NCBI RefSeq assembly: GCF_036365525.1
Contig: NC_090378.1
Location: 118,343,593 to 118,407,592, forward strand
Source: Heterodontus francisci
Lineage: Eukaryota
Direction of reading: 5' to 3'
DNA length: 64,000 nucleotides
Positions 248-48,183 of this stretch are shown here, piece after piece; positions within the stretch are counted from its first letter, which is position 1; the number at the start of each line of letters is the position of its first letter. Position numbers and translations under genes: made by a program. The notes below the pieces were generated by a model. That model was not told the DNA's origin. It did not search any database and saw nothing but the letters and a program-made list of their open reading frames with translations.

Positions 248-3200
248 TATATATATTATATATAACTGTGGGATGTGTCAGTACAGGAGGTGGGACTTTG
301 TGTCCATTATTATATATTATATATAACTGTGGGATGCGTCAGTACAGGAGGTGGGACTTTGTGTCCATTACTATATATTATATATAACTGTGGGATGCGT
401 CAGTGCAGGAGGTGGGACTTTGTGTCCATTATTATATATTATATATAACTGTGGGATGCGTCAGTACAGGAGGTGGGACTTTGTGTCCATTACTATATAT
501 TATATATAACTGTGGAATGTGTCAGTACAGGAGGTGGGACTTTGTGTCCAATACTATATATTATATATAACTGTGGGATGCGTCAGTGCAGGAGGTGGGA
601 CTGTGTGTTCATTATTATTTATTATATATAACTGTGGGATGTGTCAGTACAGGAGGTGGGACTTTCTGTCCATTACTATATATTATATATAACTGTGGAA
701 TGTGTCAGTACCGGAGGTGGGACTTTGTGTCCATTACTAGATATTATATATAACTGTGGGATGTGTCAGTACAGGAGGTGGGACTGTGTGTCCATTATTA
801 TATATTATATATAACTGTGGAATGTGTCAGTACAGGAGGTGGGACTTTGTGTCCATTACTATATATTATATATAACTGTGGGATGTGTCAGTACAGGAGG
901 TGGGACTGTGTGTTCATTATTATTTATTATATATAACTGTGGGATGTGTCAGTACAGGAGGTGGGACTTTGTGTCCATTACTATATATTATATATTACTG
1001 TGGAATGTGTCAGTACAGGAGGTGGGACTTTGTGTCCATTACTATATATTATATATAACTGTGGGATGTGTCAGTACAGGAGGTGGGACTGTGTGTTCAT
1101 TATTATTTATTATATATAACTGTGGGATGTGTCAGTACAGGAGGTGGGACTTTGTGTCCATTACTATATATTATATATAACTGTGGGATGCGTCAGTGCA
1201 GGAGGTGGGACTTTGTGTCCATTATTATATATTATATATAACTGTGGGATGCGTCAGTACAGGAGGTGGGACTTTGTGTCCATTACTATATATTATATAT
1301 AACTGTGGAATGTGTCAGTACAGGAGGTGGGACTTTGTGTCCAATACTATATATTATATATAACTGTGGGATGCGTCAGTGCAGGAGGTGGGACTGTGTG
1401 TTCATTATTATTTATTATATATAACTGTGGGATGTGTCAGTACAGGAGGTGGGACTTTCTGTCCATTACTATATATTATATATAACTGTGGAATGTGTCA
1501 GTACCGGAGGTGGGACTTTGTGTCCATTACTAGATATTATATATAACTGTGGGATGTGTCAGTACAGGAGGTGGGACTGTGTGTCCATTATTATATATTA
1601 TATATAACTGTGGAATGTGTCAGTACAGGAGGTGGGACTTTGTGTCCATTACTATATATTATATATAACTGTGGGATGTGTCAGTACAGGAGGTGGGACT
1701 GTGTGTTCATTATTATTTATTATATATAACTGTGGGATGTGTCAGTACAGGAGGTGGGACTTTGTGTCCATTACTATATATTATATATTACTGTGGAATG
1801 TGTCAGTACAGGAGGTGGGACTTTGTGTCCATTACTATATATTATATATAACTGTGGGATGTGTCAGTACAGGAGGTGGGACTGTGTGTTCATTATTATT
1901 TATTATATATAACTGTGGGATGTGTCAGTACAGGAGGTGGGACTTTGTGTCCATTACTATATATTATATATTACTGTGGAATGTGTCAGTACAGGAGGTG
2001 GGACTTTGTGTCCATTACTATATATTATATATAACTGTGGGTTGTGTCAGTACAGGAGGTGGGACTGTGTGTTCATTATTATTTATTATATATAACTGTG
2101 GGATGTGTCAGTACAGGAGGTGGGACTGTGTGTTCATTATTATTTATTATATATAACAGTGGGATGTGTCAGTACAGGAGGTGGGACTGTGTGTCCATTA
2201 TTATAGATTATATATAACTGTGGAATGTGTCAGTGCAGGAGGTGGGACTTTGTGTTCATTATTATTTATTATATATAACTGTGGGATGTGTCAGTACAGG
2301 AGGTGGGACTGTGTGTCCATTATTATATATTATATATTACTGTGGGATGTGTCAGTACAGGAGGTGGGACTGTGTGTCCATTATTATAGATTATATATAA
2401 CTGTGGAATGTGTCAGTGCAGGAGGTGGGACTTTGTGTTCATTATTATTTATTATATATAACTGTGGGATGTGTCAGTACAGGAGGTGGGACTTTGTGTC
2501 CATTACTATATATTATATATAACTGTGGGATGCGTCAGTACAGGAGGTGGGACTGTGTGTTCATTATTATTTATAACATATAACTGTGGGATGTGTCAGT
2601 ACAGGAGGTGGGACTTTGTGTCCATTACCATATATTATATATAACTGTGGGATGTGTCAGTACAGGAGGTGGGACTTTGTGTCCATTACCATATATTATA
2701 TATAACTGTGGGATGCGTCAGTACAGGAGGTGGGATTGTGTGTTCATTATTATTTATAACATATAACTGTGGGATGTGTCAGTACAGGAGGTGGGACATT
2801 GTGTCCATTACCATATATTATATATAACTGTGGGATGTGTCAGTACAGGAGGTGGGACTTTGTGTCCATTACTATATATTATATATAACTGTGGGATGTG
2901 TCAGTACAGGAGGTGGGACTTTGTGTCCATTATTATATATTATATATAACTGTGGGATGCGTCAGTACAGGAGGTGGGACTGTGTATTCATTATTATTTA
3001 TTATATATAACTGTGGGATGCGTCAGTACAGGAGGTGGGATTGTGTGTTCATTATTATTTATAACATATAACTGTGGGATGTGTCAGTACAGGAGGTGGG
3101 ACTTTGTGTCCATTACCATATATTATATATAACTGTGGGATGTGTCAGTACAGGAGGTGGGACTTTGTGTCCATTACTATATATTATATATAACTGTGGG

Positions 3201-6200
3201 ATGTGTCAGTACAGGAGGTGGGACTTTGTGTCCATTACTATATATTATATATAACTGTGGGATGTGTCAGTACCGGAGGTGGGACTTTGTGTCCATTACT
3301 ATATATGAGATATAACTGTGGAATGTGTCAGTACAGGAGGTGGGACTTTGTGTCCATTACTATATATTATATATAACTGTGGAATGTGTCAGTACAGGAG
3401 GTGGGACTTTGTGTCCATTACTATATATTATATATAACTGTGGAATGTGTCAGTTCAGGAGGTGGGACTTTGTGTCCAATACTATATATTATATATAACT
3501 GTGGTATGTTTCATTGCAGGAGGTGGGACTGTGTGTCCATTATTATATATTATATATTACTGTGGGATGTGTCAGAGCGGGAGGTGGGACTGGGTGTCCA
3601 TTATTATATAATATATATTACTTTGGGATGTGTCAGTACAGGAGGTGGGACCGTGTGTGCATTAATATATATTAGATAAACCTGTGGGATGTGTCAGTAC
3701 AGGAGGTGAGTCTGTGTGTCCAAAATTATGCATTATATATAACTGTGGGATGTGTCAGTCCGGGAGGTGTTACTGTTTGTACATTATCATATATTATATA
3801 TAACTATGGGATGTGTCAGTACAGGAGGTGGGACTGTGTGTTCATTATTATTTATTATATATAACTGTGGGATGTGTCAGTACAGGAGGTGGGACTTTGT
3901 GTCCATTACTATATATTATATATAACAGTGGGATGTGTCAGTACAGGAGGTGTGACTGTGAGTCCATTATTATATCTTATATAAACACTGTGGGATGTGT
4001 CAGTGCGGGAGGTGGGACTTTGTGTCCATTACTATATATTATATATAACTGTGGAATGTGTCAGTACAGGAGGTGGGACTTTGTGTCCATTACTATATAT
4101 TATATATAACTGTGGGATGTGTCAGTACAGGAGGTGGGACTTTGTGTCCATTATTATACATTATATATAACTGTGGAATGTGTCAGTACAGGAGGTGGGA
4201 CTTTGTGTCCATTATTATACATTATATATAACTGTGGGATGTGTCAGTACAGGAGGTGGGACTGTGTGTTCATTATTATTTATTATATATAACTGTGGGA
4301 TGTGTCAGTACAGGAGGTGGGACTTTGTGTCCATTACTATATCTTATATATTACTGTGGAATGTGTCAGTACAGGAGGTGGGACTTTGTGTCCATTACTA
4401 TATATTATATATAACTGTGGGATGTGTCAGTACAGGAGGTGGGACTGTGTGTTCATTATTATTTATTATATATAACTGTGGGATGTGCCAGTACAGGAGG
4501 TGGGACTTTGTGTCCATTACTATTTTTTATATATAACTGTGGAATGTGTCAGTACAGGAGGTGGGACTTTGTGTCCATTACTATATATTATATATAACTG
4601 TGGGATGTGCCAGTACAGGAGGTGGGACTTTGTGTCCATTACTATATATTATATGTAACTGTGGGATGTGCCAGTACAGGAGGTGGGACTTTGTGTCCAT
4701 TATTATATATTATATATAACTGTGGGCTGTGTCAGTACAGGAGGTGGGACTGTGTGTCCATTATTATATATTATATATAACTGTGGGATGTGTCAGTACA
4801 GGAGGTGGGACTTTGTGTCCATTACTATATATTATATATAACTGTGGGATGTGTCAGTACAGGAGGTGGGACTGTGTGTCCATTATTATATATTATATAT
4901 AACTGTGGGATGTGTCAGTACAGGAGGTGGGACTTTGTGTCCATTACTATATATTATATATAACTGTGGGATGTGTAAGTGCTTGAGGTGGGACTGTGTG
5001 TTCATTATTATTTATTATATATAACTGTGGGATGTGCCAGTACAGGAGGTGGGACTTTGTGTCCATTACTATTTTTTATATATAACTGTGGAATGTGTCA
5101 GTGCAGGAGGTGGGACTGTGTGTCCATTATTATATATTATATATAACTGTGGGATGTGTCAGTACAGGAGGTGGGACTGTGTGTTCATTATTATTTATTA
5201 TATATAACTGTGGGATGTGCCAGTACAGGAGGTGGGACTTTGTGTCCATTACTATTTTTTATATATAACTGTGGAATGTGTCAGTACAGGAGGTGGGACT
5301 TTGTGTCCATTACTATATACTATATATAACTGTGGGATGTGTCAGTACAGGAGGTGGGACTGTGTGTCCATTATTATATATTGTCTATAACTGTGGGATG
5401 TGTCAGTACAGGAGGTGGGACTTTGTGTCCATTACTATATATTATATATAACTGTGGGATGTGTCAGTACAGGAGGTGGGACTATGTGTCCATTATTATA
5501 TATTATATATAACTGTGGGATGTGTCAGTGCAGGAGGTGGGACTTTGTGTCCATTACTAAATATTATATATAACTGTGGGATGTGTCAGTACAGGAGGTG
5601 GGACTGTGTGTCCATTATTATATATTATATATAACTGTGGGATGTGTCATTACAGGAGGTGGGACTGTGTGTTCATTATTATTTATTATATATAACTGTG
5701 GGATGTGACAGTACAGGAGGTGGGACTGTGCGTCCATTATTATATATTATATATAACTGTGGGATGTGTCAGTACAGGAGGTGGGACTTTGTGTCCATTA
5801 CTATATATTATATATAACTGTGGGATGTGTCAGTACAGGAGGTGGGACTGTGTGTTCATTATTATTTATTATATATAACTGTGGGATGTGTCAGTACAGG
5901 AGGTGGGACTGTATGTCCATTACTATATATTATAAATAACTGTGGAATGTGTCAGTACAGGAGGTGGGACTTTGTGTCCATTACTATATATTATATATAA
6001 CTGTGGAATGTGTCAGTACAGGAGGTGGGACATTGTGTCCATTACTATATATTATATATAACTGTGGAATGTGTCAGTACAGGAGGTGGGACTGGGTGTC
6101 CATTATTATATAATATATATTACTTTGGGATGTGTCAGTACAGGAGGTGGGACCGTGTGTGCATTAATATATATTAGATAAACCTGTGGGATGTGTCAGT

Positions 6201-9200
6201 ACAGGAGGTGAGTCTGTGTGTCCAAAATTATGCATTATATATAACTGTGGGATGTGTCAGTCCGGGAGGTGTTACTGTTTGTACATTATCATATATTATA
6301 TATAACTATGGGATGTGTCAGTACAGGAGGTGGGACTGTGTGTTCATTATTATTTATTATATATAACTGTGGGATGTGTCAGTACAGGAGGTGGGACTTT
6401 GTGTCCATTACTATATATTATATATAACAGTGGGATGTGTCAGTACAGGAGGTGTGACTGTGAGTCCATTATTATATCTTATATAAACACTGTGGGATGT
6501 GTCAGTGCGGGAGGTGGGACTTTGTGTCCATTACTATATATTATATATAACTGTGGAATGTGTCAGTACAGGAGGTGGGACTTTGTGTCCATTACTATAT
6601 ATTATATATAACTGTGGGATGTGTCAGTACAGGAGGTGGGACTTTGTGTCCATTATTATACATTATATATAACTGTGGAATGTGTCAGTACAGGAGGTGG
6701 GACTTTGTGTCCATTACTATACATTATATATAACTGTGGGATATGTCAGTACAGGAGGTGGGACTGTGTGTTCATTATTATTTATTATATATAACTGTGG
6801 GATGTGCCAGTACAGGAGGTGGGACTTTGTGTCCATTATTATATATTATATATAACTGTGGGCTGTGTCAGTACAGGAGGTGGGACTGTGTGTCCATTAT
6901 TATATATTATATATAACTGTGGGATGTGTCAGTACAGGAGGTGGGACTTTGTGTCCATTACTATATATTATATATAACTGTGGGATGTGTCAGTACAGGA
7001 GGTGGGACTGTGTGTCCATTATTATATATTATATATAACTGTGGGATGTGTCAGTACAGGAGGTGGGACTTTGTGTCCTTTACTATATATTATATATAAC
7101 TGTGGGATGTGTAAGTGCTTGAGGTGGGACTGTGTGTTCATTATTATTTATTATATATAACTGTGGGATGTGCCAGTACAGGAGGTGGGACTTTGTGTCC
7201 ATTACTATTTTTTATATATAACTGTGGAATGTGTCAGTGCAGGAGGTGGGACTGTGTGTCCATTATTATATATTATATATAACTGTGGGATGTGTCAGTA
7301 CAGGAGGTGGGACTGTGTGTTCATTATTATTTATTATATATAACTGTGGGATGTGCCAGTACAGGAGGTGGGACTTTGTGTCCATTACTATTTTTTATAT
7401 ATAACTGTGGAATGTGTCAGTACAGGAGGTGGGACTTTGTGTCCATTACTATATACTATATATAACTGTGGGATGTGTCAGTACAGGAGGTGGGACTGTG
7501 TGTCCATTATTATATATTGTCTATAACTGTGGGATGTGTCAGTACAGGAGGTGGGACTTTGTGTCCATTACTATATATTATATATAACTGTGGGATGTGT
7601 CAGTACAGGAGGTGGGACTATGTGTCCATTATTATATATTATATATAACTGTGGGATGTGTCAGTGCAGGAGGTGGGACTTTGTGTCCATTACTAAATAT
7701 TATATATAACTGTGGGATGTGTCAGTACAGGAGGTGGGACTGTGTGTCCATTATTATATATTATATATAACTGTGGGATGTGTCATTACAGGAGGTGGGA
7801 CTGTGTGTTCATTATTATTTATTATATATAACTGTGGGATGTGACAGTACAGGAGGTGGGACTGTGCGTCCATTATTATATATTATATATAACTGTGGGA
7901 TGTGTCAGTACAGGAGGTGGGACTTTGTGTCCATTACTATATATTATATATAACTGTGGGATGTGTCAGTACAGGAGGTGGGACTGTGTGTTCATTATTA
8001 TTTATTATATATAACTGTGGGATGTGTCAGTACAGGAGGTGGGACTGTGAGCCCATTATTATATATTCTAGATAACAGTGGGATGTGTCAGTACAGGAGG
8101 TGGGACTGTGAGTCCATTATTATATCTTATATAAACACTTTGGGATGTGTCAGTGAGGGAGGTGGGACAGTGTGTCCATTATTATATATTATATATAACT
8201 GTGGAATGTGTCAGTGCAGGAGATGGTACCATGTGTCCTTTATTATATATTATATATAACTGTGGGATGTGTCAGTGCTGGAGGTGGGACCGTGTGTGCA
8301 TTATTATATATTATATATAACTGTGGGATATGTCAGTGCAGGAGATGGTACCATGTGTCCTTTATTATATATTATATATAACTGTGGGATGTGTCAGTCC
8401 AGGAGGTGGGACTGTGTGTCCATTATTATATATTATATATAACTGTGGGATATGTCAGTGCAGGAGATGGTACCATGTGTCCTTTATTATATATTATATA
8501 TAACTGTGGGATGTGTCAGTCCAGGAGGTGGGACTGTGTGTCCTTTATTATATATTATATATAACTGTGGGATGTGTCAGTGCTGGAGGTGGGACTGTGT
8601 GTCCTTTATTATGTATTATATATAACTGTGAGATGTGTCAGAATAGGAGGTGGGACTGTGTGTCCATTATTATATAATATATATAACTGTGGGATGTGTC
8701 AGTGCTGGAGGTGGGACTGTGTGTCCTTTATTATGTATTATATATAACTGTGTAATGTGTCAGTACTGGAGGTGAGTCTGTGTGTCCATTATGATATATT
8801 ATGTATAACTGTGTGATGTGTCAGTGCGGGAGGTGTGACTGTTTGTACATTATCATATATTATATATAACTATGGGATGTGTCAGTGCAGGAGGTGGGAC
8901 TGTGAGTCCATTATTATATATTGTATAAACACTGTGGGATGTGTCAGTGCGGGAGGTGGGATTCTGTGTCCATTATTATATATTATATAAACCTGTGGGA
9001 TGTGTAAGTGCTTGAGGTGGGACTGTGTGTCCATTATTATATATTATATATAACTGTGGGATGTGTCAGTGCGGGAGGTGGGACTGTGTGTCAATTATTA
9101 TATATTATATAAACCTGTGGGATGTGTCAGTGCAGGAGGTGGGTCTCTGTGTCCATTATTATATATTATATAAACCTGTGGGATGTGTCAGTACAGGAGG

Positions 9201-11920
9201 TGGGACTGTGTGGACATTATTATATATTATATGTAACTGTGGGATATGTCAGTACAGGAGGTGGGACTCTGTGTCCATTATTATATATTATATATAACTG
9301 TGGGAAGTGTCAGTTCGGGAGGTGGTACTGTGTGTCCATTATTATAGATTATATAAACTTGAGGGATGTGTAAAGGTGGGAGGTGGGGCTGTGTGTCCAT
9401 TATTATATATTATATATAACTGTGGGATGTGTCAGTACGGGAGGTGGTACTGTGTGTCCATTATTATATATTATATGTGACTGTGGGATGTGTCAGCACA
9501 GGAGGTGGGACTGTGTGTCCATTATTATATATTATATATAACTGGGATGTTTCAGTGCAGGAGGTGGGACTGTGTGTCCTTTATTATGTATTATATATAA
9601 GTGTGAGATGTGCCAGTACAAGAGGTGGGACTGTGTGTCCATTATTATATATTATATAAACGTTTGGGATGTGTCAGAGCGGGAGGTGGGACTGTGTGTC
9701 CATTATTATGTATTATATATAACTGTGGGATGTGTCAGTACAGGAGGTGGGACTCTGTGTCCATTATTATGTATTATATATAACTGTGGGATGTGTCAAT
9801 ACAGGAGGTGGGACTCTGTGTCCATTATTATATATTATATATATCTGTGGGATGTGTCAGAGCGGGAGGTAGGACTGTGTGTCCATTATTTTATATTATA
9901 TATAACAGTGGGATGTGACAGTACAGGAGGTGGGACTGTGTGTCCATTATTATATTTTATATAAACCTGTGGGATGTGTCAGTGCAGGAGGTGGGACCGT
10001 GTGTGCATTATTATATATTAGATATAACTGTGGGATGTGTCAGTGCAGGAGGTGGGACTGTGTGTCCATTATTTTATATTAGATATAACTGTGGGATGTG
10101 TCAGCACAGGAGGTGGGACTGTGTGTCCATTATTATATATTATATATAACTGTGGGACGTGTCAGTGCAGGAGGTGGGACTGTGTGTCCATTATTTTATA
10201 TTAGATATAACTGTGGGATGTGTCAGCACAGGAGGTGGGACTGTGTGTCCATTATTATATTTTATATAAACCTGTGGGATGTGTCAGCACAGGAGGTGGG
10301 ACTGTGTGTCCATTATTATATTTTATATAAACCTGTGGGATGTGTCAGTGCCGGAGGTGAGACTGTGTGTCCATTATTATAGATTATATAAACCTGTGGG
10401 ATGTGTCAGTGCAGTAGGTGGGACTCTGTGTCCATTATTATATATTATATAAACCTTTGGGATGTGTCATTGCGGGAGGTGGGACTCTGTGTCCATTATT
10501 ATACATTATATATAACTGTGGGATGTGTCAGTGCAGGAGGTGGGACTCTGTGTCCATTATTATATTTTATATAGAACTGTGGGATGTGTCAGAACATGAG
10601 GTGGGACTGTGTGTCCATTATTATATATTATATATAACTGTGGGATGTGTCAGAGCATGATGTGGGACTGTGTGTCCATTATTATATATTATATATAACA
10701 GTGGGATGTGTCAGTGCAGGAGGTGGTACCGTGTGTCCTTTATTATGTATTATATATAACTGTGAGATGTGCCAGTGCAGGAGGTGGGACTGTGTGTCCA
10801 TTCTTATATATTATATAAACCTTTGGGATGTGTCAGTGCGGGAGGTGGGACTGTGTGTCGATGATGATATATTATATATTACTGCGGGATATGTCAGTAG
10901 AGGAGGTGGGTCTGTGTGTCTATCATTATATATTATATATAAATGTGCTATGTTTCAGTGCAGGAGGTGGGACCGTGTGTCCATTATTAAGTATTATATA
11001 TAACTGTGAGATGTTTCAGTGCAGGACGTGGGACTGTGTGTCCATTATTACATATTATATATAACTGTGGGATGTGTCAGTACGGGAGGTGGGACTGTGT
11101 GTCCTTTATTATATATTATATATAACTGTGAGATATTTCAGTGCAGGACGTGGGACTGTGTGTCCATTATTACATATTATATATAACTGTGGGATGTGTC
11201 AGTACGGGAGGTGGGACTGTGTGTCCATTATTATATATTATATATAACTGTGGGATGTGTCAGTGCCGGAGGTGGGACTGTGTGTCCATTATTATGTATT
11301 ATATATAACTGTGGGATGTGTCAGTCCAGGAGGTGGGACTGTGTGTCCATTATTATATATTATATATAACTGTGGGATGTTTCATTGCGGGAGGTGGGAC
11401 TGTGTGTCTATCATTATATATTATATATAAATGTGCTATGTTTCAGTGCAGGAGGTGGGACCGTGTGTCCATTATTAAGTATTATATATAACTGTGAGAT
11501 GTGCCAGTCCAGGAGGTGGGACTGTGTGTCCTTTATTATATATTATATATAAATGTGCTATGTTTCAGTGCAGGAGGTGGGACCGTGTGTCCATTATTAA
11601 GTATTATATATAACTGTGAGATGTTTCAGTGCAGGACGTGGGACTGTGTGTCCTTTATTATATATTATATGTAACTGTGGGAAGCGCCAGTACAGGAGGT
11701 GGGACTGTGTGTCTATTATTACATATTATATATAACAGTGGGATGTGTCAGTACGGGAGGTGGGACTGTGTGTCCATTATTATATATTATATATTACTGT
11801 GGGATGTGTCAGTACAGGAGGTGGGACTGTGTGTCCATTATTATATATTATATATAACTGTGGGATGTGTCAGTACAGGAGGTGGGACTGTGTGTTCATT
11901 ATTATTTATTATATATAACT
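248..11920. repeat. 61-bp tandem satellite, left block (~190 units)
   Basis: Monomer AACTGTGGGATGTGTCAGTACAGGAGGTGGGACT(G/T)TGTGTCCATTA(T/C)TATATATTATATAT with period 61. Most diverged between ~8000 and ~11800. Confidence 0.98.
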
Positions 11921-13321
11921 GGCTTTCGTGCAGAGAGATTGACTATTGACATGCTGTTCTCCCTTCGTCAGATACAGGAGAAATGCCGTGAACAACAGAT
12001 GCCCCTCTACATTGCTTTCATTGATCTCACCAAAGCCTTTGACCTCGTCAGCAGACGTGGTCTCTTCAGACTACTAGAAAAGATCGGATGTCCACCAAAG
12101 CTACTAAGTATCATCACCTCATTCCATGACAATATGAAAGGCACAATTCAACATGGTGGCTCCTCATCAGAGCCCTTTCCTATCCTGAGTGGTGTGAAAC
12201 AGGGCTGTGTTCTCGCACCCACACTTTTTGGGATTTTCTTCTCCCTGCTGCTTTCACATGCGTTCAAATCCTCTGAAGAAGGAATTTTCCTCCACACAAG
12301 ATCAGGGGGCAGGTTGTTCAACCTTGCCCGTCTAAGAGCGAAGTCCAAAGTACGGAAAGTCCTCATCAGAGAACTCCTCTTTGCTGACGATGCTGCTTTA
12401 ACATCTCACACTGAAGAATGCCTGCAGAGTCTCATCGACAGGTTTGCGTCTGCCTGCAATGAATTTGGCCTAACCATCAGCCTCAAGAAAACGAACATCA
12501 TGGGGCAGGATGTCAGAAATGCTCCATCCATCAATATTGGCGACCACGCTCTGGAAGTGGTTCAAGAGTTCACCTACCTAGGCTCAACTATCACCAGTAA
12601 CCTGTCTCTAGATGCAGAAATCAACAAGCGCATGGGTAAGGCTTCCACTGCTATGTTCAGACTGGCCAAGAGAGTGTGGGAAAATGGCGCACTGACACGG
12701 AACACAAAAGTCCGAGTGTATCAGGCCTGTGTCCTCAGTACCTTGCTCTACGGCAGCGAGGCCTGGACAACGTATGCCAGCCAAGAGCGACGTCTCAATT
12801 CATTCCATCTTCGCTGCCTTCGGAGAATACTTGGCATCAGGTGGCAGGACTATATCTCCAACACAGAAGTCCTTGAAGCGGCCAACATCCCCAGCTTATA
12901 CACACTACTGAGTCAGCGGCGCTTGAGATGGCTTGGCCATGTGAGCCGCATGGAAGATGGCAGGATCCCCAAAGACACATTGTACAGCGAGCTCGCCACT
13001 GGTATCAGACCCACCGGCCGTCCATGTCTCCGTTATAAAGACGTCTGCAAACGCGACATGAAATCGTGTGACATTGATCACAAGTCGTGGGAGTCAGTTG
13101 CCAGCATTCGCCAGAGCTGGCGGGCAGCCATAAAGACAGGGCTAAATTGTGGCGAGTCGAAGAGACTTAGTAGTTGGCAGGAAAAAAGACAGAGGCGCAA
13201 GGGGAGAGCCAACTGTGCAACAGCCCCAACAAACAAATTTCTCTGCAGCACCTGTGGAAGAGCCTGTCACTCCAGAATTGGCCTTTATAGCCACTCCAGG
13301 CGCTGCTTCACAAACCACTGA
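11921..13321 (+). CDS. Partial RTE reverse transcriptase ORF (RT domain plus C-terminal Zn finger, no endonuclease)
   Basis: Uninterrupted frame to the stop at 13319-13321. The first 18 codons of track ORF 11867..13321 are satellite read-through. Confidence 0.85.
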   Translation, partial: GFRAERLTIDMLFSLRQIQEKCREQQMPLYIAFIDLTKAFDLVSRRGLFRLLEKIGCPPKLLSIITSFHDNMKGTIQHGGSSSEPFPILSGVKQGCVLAPTLFGIFFSLLLSHAFKSSEEGIFLHTRSGGRLFNLARLRAKSKVRKVLIRELLFADDAALTSHTEECLQSLIDRFASACNEFGLTISLKKTNIMGQDVRNAPSINIGDHALEVVQEFTYLGSTITSNLSLDAEINKRMGKASTAMFRLAKRVWENGALTRNTKVRVYQACVLSTLLYGSEAWTTYASQERRLNSFHLRCLRRILGIRWQDYISNTEVLEAANIPSLYTLLSQRRLRWLGHVSRMEDGRIPKDTLYSELATGIRPTGRPCLRYKDVCKRDMKSCDIDHKSWESVASIRQSWRAAIKTGLNCGESKRLSSWQEKRQRRKGRANCATAPTNKFLCSTCGRACHSRIGLYSHSRRCFTNH

Positions 13322-13382
13322 CCACCTCCAGGCGCGTATCCATTGTCTCTCGAGATAAGGAGGCCCAAAAGAAGAAAAAAGA
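11921..13382 (+). mobile_element. 5'-truncated RTE-clade (BovB-like) LINE inserted in the satellite, with target-site duplication
   Basis: RT motifs (GFR, FIDLTKAFDLV, GVKQGCVLAPTLF, LFADD, FTYLGS), RLRWLGHV, C-terminal CxxC-x12-H-x3-C, short 3' UTR and A/GAA-rich tail. TSD ATATATAACTG at 11911-11921 and 13383-13393. Confidence 0.95.
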
Positions 13383-16300
13383 ATATATAACTGTGGGCTG
13401 TGTCAGTACAGGAGGTGGGACTGTGTGTTCATTATTATTTGTTATATATAACTGTGGGATGTGTCAGTACAGGAGGTGGGACTGTGTGTTCATTATTATT
13501 TATTATATATAACTGTGGGATGTGTCAGTACAGGAGGTGGGACTGTGTGTTCATTATTATTTATTATATATAACTGTGGGATGTGTCAGTACAGGAGGTG
13601 GGACAGTGTGTCCATTATTATTTATTATATATAACTGTGGAATGTGTCAGTACAGGACGTGGGACAGTGTGTCCATTATTATTTATTATATATAACTGTG
13701 GAATGTGTCAGTACAGGAGGTGGGACTGTGTGTCCGTTACTATATATTAGATATAACTGTGGGATGTGTCAGTACAGGAGGTGGGACTGTGTGTTCATTA
13801 TTATTTATTATATATAACTGTGGAATGTGTCATTACAGGAGGTGGGACTGTGTGTCCATTAATATATATTACATATAACTGTGGGATGTGTCAGTACAGG
13901 AGGTGGGACTGTGTGTCCGTTACTATATATTAGATATAACTGTGGGATGTGTCAGTACAGGAGGTGGGACTGTGTGTCCATTATTATATATTATATATAA
14001 CTGTGGGATGTGTCAGTGCAGGAGGTGGGACTGTGTGTCCGTTACTATATATTAGATATAACTGTGGGATGTGTCAGTACAGGAGGTGGGACTGTGTGTC
14101 CATTATTATATATTATATATAACTGTGGGATGTGTCAGTGCAGGAGGTGGGACTGTGTGTCCATTATTATATATTATATATAACTGTGGGATGTTTCAGT
14201 GCAGGAGGTGGGACTGTGTGTCCATTATTATATATTATATATAACTGTGGGATGTGTCAGTGCAGGAGGTGGGACTGTGTGTCCATTATTATATATTATA
14301 TATAACTGTGGGATGTGTCAGTGCAGGAGGTGGGACTGTGTGTCCATTATTATATATTATATATAACTGTGGGATGTGTCAGTGCAGGAGGTGGGACTGT
14401 GTGTCCATTATAATATATTATATATAACTGTGGGATGTGTCAGTCCAGGAGGTGGGACTGTGTGTCCATTATTATATATTATATATAACTGTGGGATGTG
14501 TCAGTGCAGGAGGTGGGACTGTGTGTCCATTATTATATATTATATATAACTGTGGGATGTGTCAGTGCAGGAGGTGGGACTGTGTGTCCATTATAATATA
14601 TTATATATAACTGTGGGATGTGTCAGTCCAGGAGGTGGGACTGTGTGTCCATTATTATATATTATATATAACTGTGGGATGTGTCAGTGCAGGAGGTGGG
14701 ACTGTGTGTCCATTATTATATATTATATATAACTGTGGGATGTGTCAGTGCAGGAGGTGGGACTGTGTGTCCATTATAATATATTATATATAACTGTGGG
14801 ATGTGTCAGTCCAGGAGGTGGGACTGTGTGTCCATTATTATATATTATATATAACTGTGGGATGTGTCAGTGCAGGAGGTGGGACTGTGTGTCCATTATT
14901 ATATATTATATATAACTGTGGGATGTGTCAGTGCAGGAGGTGGGACTGTGTGTCCATTATAATATATTATATATAACTGTGGGATGTGTCAGTCCAGGAG
15001 GTGGGACTGTGTGTCCATTATTATATATTATATATAACTGTGGGATGTGTCAGTGCAGGAGGTGGGACTGTGTGTCCATTATTATATATTATATATAACT
15101 GTGGGATGTGTCAGTGCAGGAGGTGGGACTGTGTGTCCATTATAATATATTATATATAACTGTGGGATGTGTCAGTCCAGGAGGTGGGACTGTGTGTCCA
15201 TTATTATATATTATATATAACTGTGGGATGTGTCAGTGCAGGAGGTGGGACTGTGTGTCCATTATTATATATTATATATAACTGTGGGATGTGTCAGTGC
15301 AGGAGGTGGGACTGTGTGTCCATTATAATATATTATATATAACTGTGGGATGTGTCAGTCCAGGAGGTGGGACTGTGTGTCCATTATTATATATTATATA
15401 TAACTGTGGGATGTGTCAGTGCAGGAGGTGGGACTGTGTGTCCATTATTATATATTATATATAACTGTGGGATGTGTCAGTGCAGGAGGTGGGACTGTGT
15501 GTCCATTATAATATATTATATATAACTGTGGGATGTGTCAGTCCAGGAGGTGGGACTGTGTGTCCATTATTATATATTATATATAACTGTGGGATGTGTC
15601 AGTGCAGGAGGTGGGACTGTGTGTCCATTATTATATATTATATATAACTGTGGGATGTGTCAGTGCAGGAGGTGGGACTGTGTGTCCATTATAATATATT
15701 ATATATAACTGTGGGATGTGTCAGTCCAGGAGGTGGGACTGTGTGTCCATTATTATATATTATATATAACTGTGGGATGTGTCAGTACAGGAGGTGGGAC
15801 TGTGTGTCCATTATTATATATTATATATAACTGTGGGATGTTTCAGTGCAGGACGTGGGACTGTGTGTCCATTATTCTATATTATATATAACTGTGGGAT
15901 GTGTCAGTCCAGGAGGTGGGACTGTGTGTCCATTATTATATATTATATATAACTGTGGGATGTGTCAGTGCAGGAGGTGGGACTGTGTGTCCATTATTAT
16001 ATATTATATATAACTGTGGGATGTGTCAGTGCAGGAGGTGGGACTGTGTGTCCGTTATTATATATTAGATATAACTGTGGGATGTGTCAGTACAGGAGGT
16101 GGGACTGTGTGTCCATTATTATATATTATATATAACTGTGGGATGTGTCAGTGCAGGAGGTGGGACTGTGTGTCCATTATTATATATTATATATAACTGT
16201 GGGATGTGTCACTACAGGAGGTGGGACTGTGTGTCCGTTACTATATATTAGATATAACTGTGGAATGTGTGTCCATTATTATATATTATATATAGCTGTG

Positions 16301-19300
16301 GGATGTTTCAGTCCAGGAGGTGAGACTGTGTGTCCATTATTATATATTGTATATAACTGTGGGATGTGTCAGTCCAGGAGGTGGGACTGTGTGTCCATTA
16401 TTATATATTATATATAACTGTGGGATGTTTCAGTCCAGGAGGTGGGACTGTGTGTCCATTATTATATATTGTATATAACTGTGGGATGTGTCAGTCCAGG
16501 AGGTGGGACTGTGTGTCCATTATTATATATTATATATAACTGTGGGATGTGTCAGTACAGGAGGTGGGACTCTGTGTCCATTATTATATATTATATATAG
16601 CTGTGGGATGTGTCAGTCCAGGAGGTGGGACTGTGTGTCCATTATTATATATTATATATAACTGTGGGACGTGTCAGTACCGGAGGTGGGACTGTGTGTC
16701 CATTATTATATATTATATATAGCTGTGGGATGTGTCAGTGCAGGAGGTGGGACTGTGTATCCATTATTATATATTATATATAGCTGTGGGATGTGTCAGT
16801 ACAGGAGGTGGGACTGTGTATCCATTATTATATATTATATATAGCTGTGGGATGTGTCAGTCCAGGAGGTGGGACTGTGTGTCCATTATTATATATTATA
16901 TATCACTGTGGGATGTGTCAGTACAGGAGGTGGGACTGTGTATCCATTATTATATATTATATATAGCTGTGGGATGTGTCAGTACAGGAGGTGGGACTGT
17001 GTATCCATTATTATATATTATATATAGCTGTGGGATGTGTCAGTCCAGGAGGTGGGACTGTGTGTCCATTATTATATATTATATATCACTGTGGGATGTG
17101 TCAGTACGGGAGGTGGGACTGTGTATCCATTATTATATATTATATATAGCTGTGGGATGTGTCAGTCCAGGAGGTGGGACTGTGTGTCCATTATTATATA
17201 TTATATATCACTGTGGGATGTGTCAGTACGGGAGGTGGGACTGTGTGTCCATTATTATATATTATATATAGCTGTGGGATGTCTCAGTCCAGGAGGGGGA
17301 CTGTGTGTCCATTATTATATATTATATATAACTGTGGGATGTGTCAGTACAGGAGGTGGGACTCTGTGTCCATTATTATATATTATATATAGCTGTGGGA
17401 TGTGTCAGTCCAGGAGGTGGGACTGTGTGTCCATTATTATATATTATATATAACTGTGGGACGTGTCAGTACCGGAGGTGGGACTGTGTGTCCATTATTA
17501 TATATTATATATAGCTGTGGGATGTGTCAGTGCAGGAGGTGGGACTGTGTATCCATTATTATATATTATATATAGCTGTGGGATGTGTCAGTACAGGAGG
17601 TGGGACTGTGTATCCATTATTATATATTATATATAGCTGTGGGATGTGTCAGTCCAGGAGGTGGGACTGTGTGTCCATTATTATATATTATATATCACTG
17701 TGGGATGTGTCAGTACGGGAGGTGGGACTGTGTGTCCATTATTATATATTATATATAGCTGTGGGATGTCTCAGTCCAGGAGGGGGACTGTGTGTCCATT
17801 ATTATATATTATATATAACTGTGGGATGTGTCAGTACAGGAGGTGGGACTCTGTGTCCATTATTATATATTATATATAGCTGTGGGATGTGTCAGTCCAG
17901 GAGGTGGGACTGTGTGTCCATTATTATATATTATATATAACTGTGGGACGTGTCAGTACCGGAGGTGGGACTGTGTGTCCATTATTATATATTATATATA
18001 GCTGTGGGATGTGTCAGTGCAGGAGGTGGGACTGTGTATCCATTATTATATATTATATATAGCTGTGGGATGTGTCAGTACAGGAGGTGGGACTGTGTAT
18101 CCATTATTATATATTATATATAGCTGTGGGATGTGTCAGTCCAGGAGGTGGGACTGTGTATCCATTATTATATATTATATATAGCTGTGGGATGTGTCAG
18201 TCCAGGAGGTGGGACTGTGTGTCCATTATTATATATTATATATCACTGTGGGATGTGTCAGTACGGGAGGTGGGACTGTGTGTCCATTATTATATATTAT
18301 ATATAGCTGTGGGATGTCTCAGTGCGGGAGGTGGGACTATTTGTCCATTATTATCTATTATATATAACTGTGGGATGTGTCAGTCCAGGAGGTGGGACTG
18401 TGTATCCATTATTATATATTATATATAGCTGTGGGATGTGTCAGTCCAGGAGGTGGGACTGTGTATCCATTATTATCTATTATATATAACTGTGGGATGT
18501 GTCAGTACCGGAGGTGGGACTGTGTATCCATTATTATATATTATATATAGCTGTGGGATGTGTCAGTCCAGGAGGTGGGACTGTGTATCCATTATTATAT
18601 ATTATATATAGCTGTGGGATGTGTCAGTCCAGGAGGTGGGACTGTGTATCCATTATTATATATTATATATAGCTGTGGGATGTGTCAGTCCAGGAGGTGG
18701 GACTGTGTATCCATTATTATATATTATATATAGCTGTGGGATGTGTCAGTCCAGGAGGTGGGACTGTGTATCCATTATTATATATTATATATAGCTGTGG
18801 GATGTGTCAGTCCAGGAGGTGGGACTGTGTATCCATTATTATCTATTATATATAACTGTGGGATGTGTCAGTCCAGGAGGTGGGACTGTGTGTCCATTAT
18901 TATATATTATATATCACTGTGGGATGTGTCAGTCCAGGAGGTGGGACTGTGTATCCATTATTATATATTATATATAGCTGTGGGATGTGTCAGTCCAGGA
19001 GGTGGGACTGTGTGTCCATTATTATATATTATATATCACTGTGGGATGTGTCAGTCCAGGAGGTGGGACTGTGCGTCCATTATTATATATTATATATAAC
19101 TGTGGGATGTGTCAGTCCAGGAGGTGGGACTGTGTATCCATTATTATATATTATATATAACTGTGGGATGTGTCAGTCCAGGAGGTGGGACTGTGTGTCC
19201 ATTATTATATATTATATATAACTGTGGGATGTGTCAGTCCAGGAGGTGGGACTGTGTGTCCATTATTATATATTATATATCACTGTGGGATGTGTCAGTC

Positions 19301-28300: not shown

Positions 28301-31300
28301 TTATATATAGCTGTGGGATGTGTCAGTACAGGAGGTGGGACTGTGTATCCATTATTATATATTATATATAGCTGTGGGATGTGTCAGTCCAGGAGGTGGG
28401 ACTGTGTATCCATTATTATATATTATATATAGCTGTGGGATGTGTCAGTCCAGGAGGTGGGACTGTGTGTCCATTATTATATATTATATATCACTGTGGG
28501 ATGTGTCAGTACGGGAGGTGGGACTGTGTGTCCATTATTATATATTATATATAGCTGTGGGATGTCTCAGTGCGGGAGGTGGGACTATTTGTCCATTATT
28601 ATCTATTATATATAACTGTGGGATGTGTCAGTCCAGGAGGTGGGACTGTGTATCCATTATTATATATTATATATAGCTGTGGGATGTGTCAGTCCAGGAG
28701 GTGGGACTGTGTATCCATTATTATCTATTATATATAACTGTGGGATGTGTCAGTACCGGAGGTGGGACTGTGTATCCATTATTATATATTATATATAGCT
28801 GTGGGATGTGTCAGTCCAGGAGGTGGGACTGTGTATCCATTATTATATATTATATATAGCTGTGGGATGTGTCAGTCCAGGAGGTGGGACTGTGTATCCA
28901 TTATTATATATTATATATAGCTGTGGGATGTGTCAGTCCAGGAGGTGGGACTGTGTATCCATTATTATATATTATATATAGCTGTGGGATGTGTCAGTCC
29001 AGGAGGTGGGACTGTGTATCCATTATTATATATTATATATAGCTGTGGGATGTGTCAGTCCAGGAGGTGGGACTGTGTATCCATTATTATATATTATATA
29101 TAGCTGTGGGATGTGTCAGTCCAGGAGGTGGGACTGTGTATCCATTATTATCTATATATATAACTGTGGGATGTGTCAGTCCAGGAGGTGGGACTGTGTG
29201 TCCATTATTATATATTATATATCACTGTGGGATGTGTCAGTCCAGGAGGTGGGACTGTGCGTCCATTATTATATATTATATATAACTGTGGGATGTGTCA
29301 GTCCAGGAGGTGGGACTGTGTATCCATTATTATATATTATATATAGCTGTGGGATGTGTCAGTCCAGGAGGTGGGACTGTGTGTCCATTATTATATATTA
29401 TATATCACTGTGGGATGTGTCAGTCCAGGAGGTGGGACTGTGCGTCCATTATTATATATTATATATAACTGTGGGATGTGTCAGTCCAGGAGGTGGGACT
29501 GTGTATCCATTATTATATATTATATATCACTGTGGGATGTGTCAGTCCAGGAGGTGGGACTGTGTGTCCATTATTATATATTATATATAACTGTGGGATG
29601 TGTCAGTCCAGGAGGTGGGACTGTGTATCCATTATTATATATTATATATAACTGTGGGATGTGTCAGTCCAGGAGGTGGGACTGTGTATCCATTATTATA
29701 TATTATATATAACTGTGGGATGTGTCAGTCCAGGAGGTGGGACTGTGCGTCCATTATTATATATTATATATAACTGTGGGATGTGTCAGTCCAGGAGGTG
29801 GGACTGTGTATCCATTATTATATATTATATATAACTGTGGGATGTGTCAGTCCAGGAGGTGGGACTGTGCGTCCATTATTATATATTATATATAACTGTG
29901 GGATGTGTCAGTCCAGGAGGTGGGACTGTGTATCCATTATTATCTATTATATATAACTGTGGGATGTGTCAGTCCAGGAGGTGGGACTGTGTATCCATTA
30001 TTATATATTATATATAGCTGTGGGATGTGTCAGTCCAGGAGGTGGGACTGTGTATCCATTATTATATATTATATATAGCTGTGGGATGTGTCAGTCCAGG
30101 AGGTGGGACTGTGTATCCATTATTATATATTATATATAGCTGTGGGATGTGTCAGTCCAGGAGGTGGGACTGTGTATCCATTATTATCTATTCTATATAA
30201 CTGTGGGATGTGTCAGTCCAGGAGGTGGGACTGTGTGTCCATTATTATATATTATATATCACTGTGGGATGTGTCAGTCCAGGAGGTGGGACTGTGTATC
30301 CATTATTATATATTATATATAGCTGTGGGATGTGTCAGTCCAGGAGGTGGGACTGTGTGTCCATTATTATATATTATATATCACTGTGGGATGTGTCAGT
30401 CCAGGAGGTGGGACTGTGCGTCCATTATTATATATTATATATAACTGTGGGATGTGTCAGTCCAGGAGGTGGGACTGTGTATCCATTATTATATATTATA
30501 TATAACTGTGGGATGTGTCAGTCCAGGAGGTGGGACTGTGTGTCCATTATTATATATTATATATAACTGTGGGATGTCTCAGTACAGGAGGTGGGACTGT
30601 GTGTCCATTATTATATATTATATATAACTGTGGGATGTGTCAGTCCAGGAGGTGGGACTGTGTGTCCATTATTATATATTATATATAACTGTGGGATGTG
30701 TCAGTCCAGGAGGTGGGACTGTGTGTCCATTATTATATATTATATATAACTGTGGGATGTGTCAGTCCAGGAGGTGGGACTGTGTGTCCATTATTATATA
30801 TTATATATAACTGTGGGATGTTTCAGTCCAGGAGGTGGGACTGTGTGTCCATTATTATATATTATATATAACTGTGGGATGTGTCAGTCCAGGAGGTGGG
30901 ACTCTGTGTCCATTATTATATATTATATATAACTGTGGGATGTGTCAGTCCAGGAGGTGGGACTGTGCGTCCATTATTATATATTATATATAACTGTGGG
31001 ATGTGTCAGTCCAGGAGGTGGGACTCTGTGTCCATTATTATATATTATATATAACTGTGGGATGTTTCAGTCCAGGAGGTGGGACTGTGTGTCCATTATT
31101 ATATATTATATATAACTGTGGGATGTGTCAGTACGGGAGGTGGGACTGTGTGTCCATTATTATTTATTATATATAACTGTGGGCTGTGTCAGTCCAGGAG
31201 GTGGGACTCTGTGTCCATTATTATATATTATATATAACTGTGGGATGTTTCAGTCCAGGAGGTGGGACTCTGTGTCCATTATTATATATTATATATAACT

Positions 31301-34300
31301 GTGGGATGTTTCAGTCCAGGAGGTGGGACTGTGTGTCCATTATTATATATTATATATAACTGTGGGATGTATCAGTCCAGGAGGTGGGACTGTGTGTCCA
31401 TTATTATATATTATATATCACTGTGGGATGCGTCAGTACGGGAGGTGGGACTGTGTGTCCATTATTATATATTATATATAGCTGTGGGATGTCTCAGTGC
31501 GGGAGGTGGGACTATTTGTCCATTATTATATATTATATATAACTGTGGGATGTGTCAGTCCAGGAGGTGGGACTGTGTATCCATTATTATATATTATATA
31601 TAACTGTGGGATGTGTCAGTCCAGGAGGTGGGACTGTGTGTCCATTATTATATATTATATATCACTGTGGGATGTGTCAGTCCAGGAGGTGGGACTGTGT
31701 ATCCATTATTATATATTATATATAGCTGTGGGATGTGTCAGTCCAGGAGGTGGGACTGTGTGTCCATTATTATATATTATATATCACTGTGGGATGTGTC
31801 AGTCCAGGAGGTGGGACTGTGTATCCATTATTATATATTATATATAGCTGTGGGATGTGTCAGTCCAGGAGGTGGGACTGTGTGTCCATTATTATATATT
31901 ATATATCACTGTGGGATGTGTCAGTCCAGGAGGTGGGACTGTGTATCCATTATTATATATTATATATAACTGTGGGATGTGTCAGTGCAGGAGGTGGGAC
32001 TGTGTGTCCATTATTATATATTATATATAACTGTGGGATGTGTCAGTACAGGAGGTGGGACTGTGTATCCATTATTATATATTATATATAACTGTGGGAT
32101 GTGTCAGTCCAGGAGGTGGGACTGTGTATCCATTATTATATATTATATATAACTGTGGGATGTGTCAGTCCAGGAGGTGGGACTGTGTATCCATTATTAT
32201 ATATTATATATAACTGTGGGATGTGTCAGTGCAGGAGGTGGGACTGTGTGCCCATTATTATATATTATATATAACTGTGGGATGTGTCAGTCCAGGAGGT
32301 GGGACTGTGTGTCCATTATTATATATTATATATAACTGTGGGATGTGTCAGTGCAGGAGGTGGGACTGTGTGCCCATTATTATATATTATATATAACTGT
32401 GGGATGTGTCAGTCCAGGAGGTGGGACTGTGCGTCCATTATTATATATTATATATAACTGTGGGATGTGTCAGTCCAGGAGGTGGGACTGTGTATCCATT
32501 ATTATATATTATATATAACTGTGGGATGTGTCAGTCCAGGAGGTGGGACTGTGCGTCCATTATTATATATTATATATAACTGTGGGATGTGTCAGTCCAG
32601 GAGGTGGGACTGTGTATCCATTATTATCTATTATATATAACTGTGGGATGTGTCAGTCCAGGAGGTGGGACTGTGTATCCATTATTATATATTATATATA
32701 GCTGTGGGATGTGTCAGTCCAGGAGGTGGGACTGTGTATCCATTATTATATATTATATATAGCTGTGGGATGTGTCAGTCCAGGAGGTGGGACTGTGTAT
32801 CCATTATTATATATTATATATAGCTGTGGGATGTGTCAGTCCAGGAGGTGGGACTGTGTATCCATTATTATCTATTCTATATAACTGTGGGATGTGTCAG
32901 TCCAGGAGGTGGGACTGTGTGTCCATTATTATATATTATATATCACTGTGGGATGTGTCAGTCCAGGAGGTGGGACTGTGTATCCATTATTATATATTAT
33001 ATATAGCTGTGGGATGTGTCAGTCCAGGAGGTGGGACTGTGTGTCCATTATTATATATTATATATCACTGTGGGATGTGTCAGTCCAGGAGGTGGGACTG
33101 TGCGTCCATTATTATATATTATATATAACTGTGGGATGTGTCAGTCCAGGAGGTGGGACTGTGTATCCATTATTATATATTATATATAACTGTGGGATGT
33201 GTCAGTCCAGGAGGTGGGACTGTGTGTCCATTATTATATATTATATATAACTGTGGGATGTCTCAGTACAGGAGGTGGGACTGTGTGTCCATTATTATAT
33301 ATTATATATAACTGTGGGATGTGTCAGTCCAGGAGGTGGGACTGTGTGTCCATTATTATATATTATATATAACTGTGGGATGTGTCAGTCCAGGAGGTGG
33401 GACTCTGTGTCCATTATTATATATTATATATAACTGTGGGATGTTTCAGTCCAGGAGGTGGGACTGTGTGTCCATTATTATATATTATATATAACTGTGG
33501 GATGTGTCAGTACGGGAGGTGGGACTGTGTGTCCATTATTATTTATTATATATAACTGTGGGCTGTGTCAGTCCAGGAGGTGGGACTCTGTGTCCATTAT
33601 TATATATTATATATAACTGTGGGATGTGTCAGTCCAGGAGGTGGGACTCTGTGTCCATTATTATATATTATATATAACTGTGGGATGTTTCAGTCCAGGA
33701 GGTGGGACTGTGTGTCCATTATTATATATTATATATAACTGTGGGATGTGTCAGTCCAGGAGGTGGGACTGTGTGTCCATTATTATATATTATATATCAC
33801 TGTGGGATGCGTCAGTACGGGAGGTGGGACTGTGTGTCCATTATTATATATTATATATAGCTGTGGGATGTCTCAGTGCGGGAGGTGGGACTATTTGTCC
33901 ATTATTATATATTATATATAACTGTGGGATGTGTCAGTCCAGGAGGTGGGACTGTGTATCCATTATTATATATTATATATAACTGTGGGATGTGTCAGTC
34001 CAGGAGGTGGGACTGTGTGTCCATTATTATATATTATATATCACTGTGGGATGTGTCAGTCCAGGAGGTGGGACTGTGTATCCATTATTATATATTATAT
34101 ATAGCTGTGGGATGTGTCAGTCCAGGAGGTGGGACTGTGTGTCCATTATTATATATTATATATCACTGTGGGATGTGTCAGTCCAGGAGGTGGGACTGTG
34201 TATCCATTATTATATATTATATATAGCTGTGGGATGTGTCAGTCCAGGAGGTGGGACTGTGTGTCCATTATTATATATTATATATCACTGTGGGATGTGT

Positions 34301-34874
34301 CAGTCCAGGAGGTGGGACTGTGTATCCATTATTATATATTATATATAACTGTGGGATGTGTCAGTGCAGGAGGTGGGACTGTGTGTCCATTATTATATAT
34401 TATATATAACTGTGGGATGTGTCAGTACAGGAGGTGGGACTGTGTATCCATTATTATATATTATATATAACTGTGGGATGTGTCAGTCCAGGAGGTGGGA
34501 CTGTGTATCCATTATTATATATTATATATAACTGTGGGATGTGTCAGTCCAGGAGGTGGGACTGTGTATCCATTATTATATATTATATATAACTGTGGGA
34601 TGTGTCAGTGCAGGAGGTGGGACTGTGTGCCCATTATTATATATTATATATAACTGTGGGATGTGTCAGTCCAGGAGGTGGGACTGTGTGTCCATTATTA
34701 TATATTATATATAACTGTGGGATGTGTCAGTGCAGGAGGTGGGACTGTGTGCCCATTATTATATATTATATATAACTGTGGGATGTGTCAGTCCAGGAGG
34801 TGGGACTGTGTGTCCATTATTATATATTATAAATAACTGTGGGATGTCTCAGTACAGGAGGTGGGACTGTGTGT
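13383..34874. repeat. 61-bp tandem satellite, right block (~350 units, homogeneous, with higher-order repeats)
   Basis: Same monomer with variants GTGC/GTCC, TGTAT/TGCGT and TAAC/TAGC/TCAC. Ends 5 bp from the V-gene nonamer. Confidence 0.98.
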
Positions 34875-34879
34875 ATTGA

Positions 34880-34907
34880 GGATTTTGTACGGCTCTGTCT
34901 CACTGTG
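34880..34907 (-). other. Recombination signal sequence (12-RSS) of the V segment
   Basis: Minus strand reads CACAGTG (34907-34901), 12-bp spacer AGACAGAGCCGT, then ACAAAATCC (34888-34880; 8/9 to ACAAAAACC), directly after CDR3 codons ...AAC ACC CCT TA. Confidence 0.96.
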
Positions 34908-35554: not shown

Positions 35555-35589
35555 GGTATCACCCAGAGAAAGGCACGTCAGCAACTCTC

Positions 35590-36115: not shown

Positions 36116-36155
36116 CTCCATTGTTCTGTAATTCTGTTACTGATCTCTATAACAG

Positions 36156-48178: not shown

Positions 48179-48183
48179 GCTCT

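Follow-up and report, generated by a model that had tools for sequence, protein, structure and literature searches.

The Locus

A 64,000-bp stretch of the genome of the shark Heterodontus francisci (NCBI RefSeq assembly GCF_036365525.1, contig NC_090378.1, positions 118,343,593 to 118,407,592 of the forward strand), here called the window and numbered from its first base, carries an immunoglobulin variable (V) gene of the kappa type with a very long satellite array abutting it. The RAG recombinase pairs a recombination signal sequence (RSS) having a 12-bp spacer (12-RSS) with one having a 23-bp spacer (23-RSS), and a preliminary description of this DNA had claimed that the array consists of hundreds of 23-RSS-like units set beside the V gene. 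Tandem Repeats Finder (TRF) and motif counts bear this out, and what such an array could mean behind a genuine RSS is the subject of this analysis.

Applied to the whole window, TRF reports a single tandem array at 250-34874 with a period of 61 bp, 566.9 copies and 90% matches. Its roughly 567 units, characterised by TRF, by motif counts and by a per-position table of 540 units, are read here on the minus strand, where each consists of a 22-nt flank, the heptamer-like CACAGTT, a 23-nt AT-rich spacer and the nonamer-like ACACAGTCC. The base composition is strongly skewed and the polarity of the strands is extreme: the minus strand holds 826 copies of CACAGT and the plus strand none, and for CAC the respective counts are 2,467 and 89. 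The units are 95% identical to the array consensus. Neighbouring units agree at about 96% in the V-proximal third of the array versus about 90% in the distal third, and a local irregularity, a 38-bp partial unit at 16102-16428, gives rise to periods of 99 and 160 bp in the TRF output. With its long head-to-tail arrangement, fixed unit and local homogenisation, the array has the properties of a satellite.

At its left edge the array meets a 5'-truncated fragment of a long interspersed nuclear element (LINE; 1-215, minus strand), which over an alignment of 215 bp is 100% identical to positions 12901-13115. The latter belong to a second 5'-truncated LINE, with a reverse transcriptase domain, that is inserted in a satellite unit at 11921-13385 on the plus strand (open reading frame 11867-13321; Pfam RVT_1, E = 4.9e-23) and lies between direct repeats of about 10 bp (TATATAACTG), its target-site duplication. 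Because the left edge adjoins a LINE copy identical to one inserted inside the array, the edge at 248 is probably not the true end, and the array probably continues past the window, 34.6 kb being a minimum. Judged by the identity of its two copies, this LINE family has been active very recently and has struck the array twice. The gradient in homogeneity and the inserted pair of identical LINEs are ordinary satellite dynamics.

At the other end, a 5-bp linker (34875-34879, minus strand; ATTGA on the plus strand) joins the last satellite unit to the nonamer of the genuine V 12-RSS (34880-34907, minus strand). This signal consists of the heptamer CACAGTG (34901-34907), the 12-bp spacer AGACAGAGCCGT (34889-34900) and the nonamer ACAAAATCC (34880-34888), and in a scan of the window it was the only site outside the array to score at least 13/16. 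No other good RSS, no joining (J) motif and no constant (C) region was found within the 64-kb window. The V exon itself (34908-35205, minus strand) is open in frame and has the conserved Cys, Trp and YYC of a kappa-type V domain in its translation (Pfam V-set, E = 1.9e-17). Searched alone and without its leader, it is 70-76% identical to kappa-like V genes of the bamboo shark Chiloscyllium punctatum and 72% identical to one of Scyliorhinus torazame. The leader intron (35206-35391, minus strand), defined by the joints of RNA contigs from about 35202-35205 to 35392 and by depth restricted to the exons, measures 186 nt, and the leader intron of the nurse shark NS4 genes is likewise 186 bp long (PMC2193156). 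The leader exon (MISLIQLIWPLAFCVA-, 35392-35440, minus strand) is supported by the sequence, by RNA depth and by matches to the leaders of the gene models P0002 and P0004.

A Cys codon stands at 35030-35032 of the V exon (minus strand; TTRCTG), versus Phe in the bamboo-shark homologues (RFTG). More than 99% of the RNA depth at 35031 carries another letter, and the same is true of the diagnostic positions of this V copy. Of the kappa V transcripts of its family, which are very abundant, it consequently supplies a small share at most. Directly upstream of the V promoter and an octamer-like ATTTACAT lies a long, low-complexity, CT-rich tract (35580-36250), which draws reads in a capture run in which the V exon draws none.

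RSS-like Motifs in the Repeat Unit

The likeness of the units to an RSS is a matter of both sequence and spacing. About 455 units of the minus strand have the form CACAG(T/C)(T/G), exactly 23 bp, and ACA(C/A)AGTCC, in the same orientation as the V RSS, while the plus strand of the array holds one weak RSS-like match, which lies inside the inserted LINE. Counted over the whole array on the minus strand, the combination CACAGTT-23-ACACAGTCC is found in 213 units, CACAGCT-23-ACACAGTCC in 98, CACAGTT-23-ACAAAGTCC in 62 and CACAGTG-23-ACACAGTCC in 46. Among the 460 units detected by regular expression the spacer is exactly 23 bp in 455, and it begins with AT. The claim that the essential CAC is intact proved correct: of the 540 in-register units, 535 have C1 of the heptamer, 532 have A2 and 527 have C3 (97.6-99%). 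The unit that had been quoted as an example, at 293-331 on the minus strand, is likewise exact in its coordinates and spacing; on the plus strand it reads GGACTTTGT at 293-301, a 23-bp spacer at 302-324 and AACTGTG at 325-331, which places the heptamer-like element at 325-331 and the nonamer-like element, here the 7/9 variant ACAAAGTCC, at 293-301.

Other parts of the motif are further from a functional signal. A 7/9 nonamer, which the preliminary description took for the standard monomer, is right for the example unit and wrong as the norm of the array. The consensus nonamer ACACAGTCC matches the RSS consensus at 6/9; with C4, G6 and T7 in place of A4, A6 and A7 it has no A-tract, and it has neither an A-rich core nor the pattern R4-W5-R6. 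The 7/9 form ACAAAGTCC is a minority of 62-72 units (about 12%) and is confined to roughly 250-9000, the V-distal end. In addition, the consensus 'nonamer' itself contains a second CACAGT core. Positions 5-7 of the heptamer do not follow the purine-pyrimidine-purine pattern in most units, since 454 of 540 are CACNRYY and 55 are CACNRYR, and the units do not flank a V, D or J coding segment, the 22-nt flank having no significant similarity to the end of the V gene.

How much these departures matter can be gauged from mouse RAG. A pyrimidine at position 7 of the heptamer costs about 7-fold in mouse assays, CACNRYR being the preferred form (PMC9723617). In a 2025 screen of mouse nonamers, G6 on the top strand kept the contact with R391, and a functional non-canonical class, NNNRWRWCT, was defined (PMC12711392). 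These data soften an earlier caveat that the lack of A6 would leave most units weak or inert, in that G6 is tolerated; the variant ACAAAGTCC fits R4-W5-R6-W7-C8, while the majority form ACACAGTCC fails at position 4. By this pattern, 90 of the 540 units would fall into the non-canonical class.

In their geometry the units do combine a heptamer that opens with CAC, a spacer of 23 bp and an element resembling a nonamer. As had been proposed, this makes them formal 12/23 partners of the V 12-RSS next to them, and the further point that joining would be inversional also holds, the units being co-oriented with the V RSS. Such V-to-unit joining would be expected to waste the V gene.

Chance and Conservation

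The likeness was compared with chance by generating random 61-bp units under several null models, treating them as tandem and scanning both strands, with a match defined by CAC, a heptamer of at least 6/7, a spacer of exactly 12 or 23 bp and a nonamer of at least 6/9. According to the null model used, these thresholds are reached by 0.2-0.8% of random 61-mers, and by 0.02-0.1% with a nonamer of at least 7/9. At the same thresholds, no comparable match was found in the four other tandem repeats of the window or in 8.3 kb of its non-repeat sequence. A looser yardstick comes from the published density of cryptic signals that pass the recombination signal information content (RIC) score, 5e-4 per bp (PMC2193808), which would allow about 6% of random 61-mers. 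The RSS likeness is thus real and unusual, but within chance for one repeat family chosen after the fact.

If the motif were maintained as a signal, one might look for it to vary less than its surroundings. Over the 540 units the per-position entropy is 0.32 bits in the heptamer, 0.245 in the nonamer, 0.22 in the spacer and 0.24 in the flank. Because heptamer and nonamer are no lower in entropy than spacer and flank, the RSS parts of the unit are not specially conserved relative to the rest.

A likeness of this kind could also be one of descent. The unit might be the decayed relic of a real 23-RSS with its flank, derived from the end of a V-type segment or from a reinserted signal end and amplified behind the V gene, and we consider this origin doubtful without dismissing it. 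The chance level of less than 1%, together with the place directly behind a real RSS, speaks for it; the unit length is accounted for by 22 + 7 + 23 + 9; and RAG activity is known in shark germ cells (PMC2193156). However, the similarity between the unit and the V coding end with its RSS is not significant (p = 0.62; heptamer-anchored, p = 0.66-0.80), the best match to the whole V gene is a stretch of framework region 1 (p = 0.2), the 'nonamer' amounts rather to a second CACAGT core and the spacer is a simple AT-rich run. The birth of the unit from the end and RSS of this particular V gene is rejected on the lack of similarity, and the suggestion that the satellite was born from an amplified RSS accordingly finds no support as far as this V gene's RSS is concerned.

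Ties to the Kappa Locus

A satellite that happened to lie beside a V gene would be of little interest if it were scattered throughout the genome. Summed word depth in DNA contigs of the sample to which this stretch belongs is 5.2e5-9.6e5 over the units versus about 110 for near-identical single-copy flank, which corresponds to a total of about 4,750-8,700 units (0.29-0.53 Mb) in a genome no smaller than 2.6 Gb. The window alone would then hold 6-12% of all copies of the satellite genome-wide.

The second tie comes from another species. Two gene models of Chiloscyllium punctatum, P0004 and P0007, extend beyond the V gene, across its RSS and into the DNA that follows, and their translation aligns in the same frame and without gaps to that of the window, through heptamer, nonamer and the 5-nt linker up to the stop codon that the first unit carries in its AT-rich part (window PLHSETEPYKILNTHSPTSCTETSHSYL, P0007 PWHSDTQLYKNLNTHSTTACTDTSHFYI). 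Local alignment scores are 104 for P0007 and 94 for P0004, against a maximum of 48-49 for shuffled sequences. In these read-through protein models the bamboo-shark unit likewise begins 5 nt behind the V nonamer, and of the heptamer the first units keep only CAC (CAC-TTY-T and CAC-ATH). Because the alignment is gapless and in the same register, the unit and its junction with the RSS are older than the split of the two sharks. A protein search with the read-through tail of P0007 matched only itself, and a scan of metagenomes for the unit core gave 0 matches.

Short-read contigs from both DNA and RNA runs contain satellite units, and one contig from an RNA run (34849-34948, depth about 475, 9 differences) is colinear from the end of the V gene through the RSS into the first unit. 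This contig represents either carried-over DNA or a paralogous cluster that was transcribed, unrearranged, through its RSS.

These observations largely refute the notion of a generic, genome-wide satellite, or of an assembly artefact, that lies next to the V gene by chance. The window is admittedly rich in other tandem repeats, with units of 36, 43, 32 and 23 bp, which speaks for the notion. Against it stand the total of only about 0.3-0.5 Mb genome-wide, the junction 5 nt from the nonamer that is common to the bamboo shark, the presence of units in short-read contigs of DNA and RNA, and the contig that spans the junction of V, RSS and satellite, and we find it very hard to credit. A satellite distribution unrelated to antigen-receptor loci, which the preliminary description had named as telling against its own proposal, is not what is seen at the level of genome-wide copy number and of the same placement at kappa V genes of the bamboo shark.

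A Probable Expanded V-J Interval

In shark kappa genes, what lies directly 3' of the V 12-RSS is the start of the V-J interval, and the array begins precisely there, 5 bp past the nonamer. We therefore take the array to be the expanded V-J intervening sequence of a kappa cluster of the NS4 type, the J side being supplied by the logic of the cluster. The split NS4 genes of the nurse shark (Lee et al., 2000; PMC2193156) have the same layout of leader, 186-bp intron, V, 12-RSS and excised intervening DNA. They differ in the length of the interval, which is about 500 bp in NS4 (PMC2193156) versus at least 34.6 kb of satellite here. Our literature searches turned up no account of a satellite located in the V-J intervals of shark kappa genes.

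On balance, we think it probable that the array is a cluster-specific V-J satellite whose RSS likeness is incidental or at most weakly active. A short unit 5 nt behind the V nonamer would already have been present in the common ancestor with the bamboo shark, and in the lineage considered here it would have expanded to a satellite with 61-bp units that measures 35 kb or more. Growth and homogenisation may have proceeded by unequal exchange or replication slippage, and the satellite may have spread along with the clusters as these duplicated. Upon V-J joining the array would be discarded on the excision circle. The RSS likeness would be a by-product of the unit, in which a CACAGT core is followed by a 20-nt AT-rich run and a second CACAGT core that mimics a nonamer. 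The preliminary description missed a consequence of this placement, namely that in a V-J interval the units would be convergent with the presumed 23-RSS of J and the array would be removed by normal joining.

Several points weigh against this reading. There is no J within the window, and the assignment to a V-J interval rests on the logic of the cluster. The heptamer deviates from the purine-pyrimidine pattern only at position 7, with 55 units showing the full CACNRYR, and the spacer starts with a favourable AT; the 90 units that fit the non-canonical RWRWC class of nonamers (PMC12711392) are of the same tenor. With fewer than 1% of random 61-mers reaching this quality, pure coincidence is uncomfortable next to a real RSS. 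Finally, the copy number sums the depths of contigs and may be in error by about two-fold.

Shark light-chain clusters are textbook examples of compact V-J-C units, with about 0.5 kb from V to J. The interval described here amounts to tens of kilobases of a satellite that seems nearly absent from the rest of the genome and that starts at a fixed nucleotide behind the RSS, a point common to another shark, so that cluster architecture has to be seen differently even should the repeat prove neutral. The satellite also goes some way towards explaining why shark assemblies built from short reads are broken at kappa V genes.

The array might instead be a cis-acting architectural or silencing element, such as a nucleator of heterochromatin or a barrier to loop extrusion or scanning, in which case the RSS likeness would be irrelevant. 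Its position between V and J is that of Cer and Sis in the mouse Vk-Jk region (PMC11153149), which are likewise non-coding and could by analogy suggest an influence on RAG access and scanning, and the satellite recurs in a second species. Two TGGGA cores are present in each unit on the plus strand (P = 0.014), as is an 11/14 match (ACAGGAGGTGGGAC) with a CTCF core consensus (P = 0.06), the unit at 34560-34620 being an example, and representation in RNA per copy is low (ratio about 0.02-0.1). These motif tests were made post hoc and are not significant once the choice is allowed for, and in nurse shark clusters some 500 bp from V to J are sufficient (PMC2193156). An NF-kB-like site in the unit gave P = 0.35 in the same kind of test. 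Moreover, Cer and Sis are short clusters of CTCF sites with demonstrated function, whereas the array is only weakly similar to them in its motifs. A Cer/Sis-like role is therefore speculation, and to an architectural or silencing element in general we give little credence. The ends GGAC and GTCC of GGACACACAGTCC in the unit form a small inverted repeat.

RAG and the Array

The proposal that gives the RSS likeness its full weight is that the units are working cryptic 23-RSSs engaged by RAG, and would thereby help limit the number of kappa clusters that rearrange. Three routes have been considered: inversional pairing with the V 12-RSS, which would inactivate the cluster; a sink; and some 2,500 convergent CAC targets for RAG scanning from a recombination centre at J. 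In mouse Igh, RAG scans from a J-based centre (PMC11153149), and if shark RAG does the same the array would be DNA that is traversed. The exact 23-bp spacing (455/460), the CAC kept in more than 97% of units and the 46-55 units with a consensus heptamer are all as this proposal would have it, as are the extreme strand polarity of CACAGT and CAC and the restriction of the satellite to the locus, given its low genome-wide copy number. The 90 units in the functional non-canonical class and the tolerance of G6 by the nonamer-binding domain of RAG1 (PMC12711392) also speak for it.

There is a precedent as well. The mouse gamma (major) satellite (Cowell et al., 2003; PMC2193808) is built, like the shark array, of tandem monomers in which a heptamer with CAC and a nonamer-like element stand 23 bp apart. 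Its cryptic recombination signals have been suggested to serve RAG as a substrate or a safe sink, and perhaps to be left over from the evolution of the RSS, and those of the 23-bp type recombine at 0.02-0.6% and are cleaved in cells (PMC2193808). The two satellites differ in other respects. The mouse monomer is 234 bp long, pericentromeric, makes up about 6% of the genome and is unrelated to immunoglobulin loci, whereas the shark unit is 61 bp long, amounts to about 0.3-0.5 Mb and lies in a kappa cluster. The active mouse signals also keep the A-run of the nonamer and their activity has been measured, in contrast to the putative signal of the shark unit, which has no A-run.

Other findings speak against it. 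Heptamer and nonamer are no better conserved than the rest of the unit, the prevailing nonamer lacks an A-tract and carries a pyrimidine at position 4, and the heptamers of the first bamboo-shark units are poor. Competition from 500 or more partners would be wasteful of V genes, but expression of the V family is abundant. The functional rules on which the proposal draws all come from mouse RAG. Among the joints listed in the RNA and DNA contigs there is no strand-changing joint of V to satellite, a weak test given that contigs drop rare forms and that three of the four runs are available as contigs. Per copy, the satellite is under-represented in RNA, with an RNA/DNA depth ratio of about 0.02-0.1 versus about 1 for the V intron. 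We judge the units to be at most a weak cryptic signal and do not think that they are a selected RAG target; that they are working signals engaged by RAG is, in our estimation, unlikely. In a broader formulation, a kappa-locus satellite with a position conserved between shark species would set 500-800 co-oriented 23-RSS-like units, with about 2,500 polarised CACs, between V and J of every cluster. RAG would use these units as a sink, be impeded by them in scanning, or join them to J or, by inversion, to V, which would inactivate the V gene; how many of the dozens of kappa clusters rearrange in one B cell would be tuned in this way. Of this formulation we are quite sceptical.

The mammalian kappa-deleting element (KDE), also known as the recombining sequence (RS), consists of one strong RSS on the 3' side of C-kappa, which is deleted when this RSS is used. 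The preliminary description had compared the array with it, and the likeness consists in a non-coding signal with a 23-bp spacer that could pair with a Vk 12-RSS to give a non-productive product. In the shark there are instead hundreds of weak units between V and J, co-oriented with the V RSS so that joining would be by inversion and J-C would be left in place. The comparison fails on position, as the array is on the J side of V and not 3' of C; because it lies between V and J, joining would not delete C and the array is not an analogue of KDE/RS.

Should it nonetheless be true that RAG touches the units, shark kappa clusters would offer a natural experiment on the load of cryptic signals, on the 12/23 rule and on RAG scanning in a multi-cluster system, as well as a handle on how sharks restrict light-chain rearrangement.

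Other Repeats in the Window

Upstream of the V gene, the window also holds repeats of other kinds. Three minisatellites, with units of 43 bp (15 copies, 36739-37404), 32 bp (15 copies, 42833-43309) and 23 bp (40 copies, 43437-44358), have no RSS-like match. A CR1-like LINE at 45595-47574 on the plus strand has an open reading frame (ORF2) of 659 aa with an RVT_1 domain, and at its tail (47717-47742) an 8-bp microsatellite, (TCTTATGA)x3, that is typical of the 3' ends of CR1 elements. Its best protein matches reach 80% at the closest, with 66% for Chiloscyllium and 57% for Mobula. Another large satellite, made up of some 440 copies of a 36-bp unit and strongly skewed towards C over G, occupies 48183-64000 and runs off the end of the window, and the V gene is thus sandwiched between two unrelated satellites.

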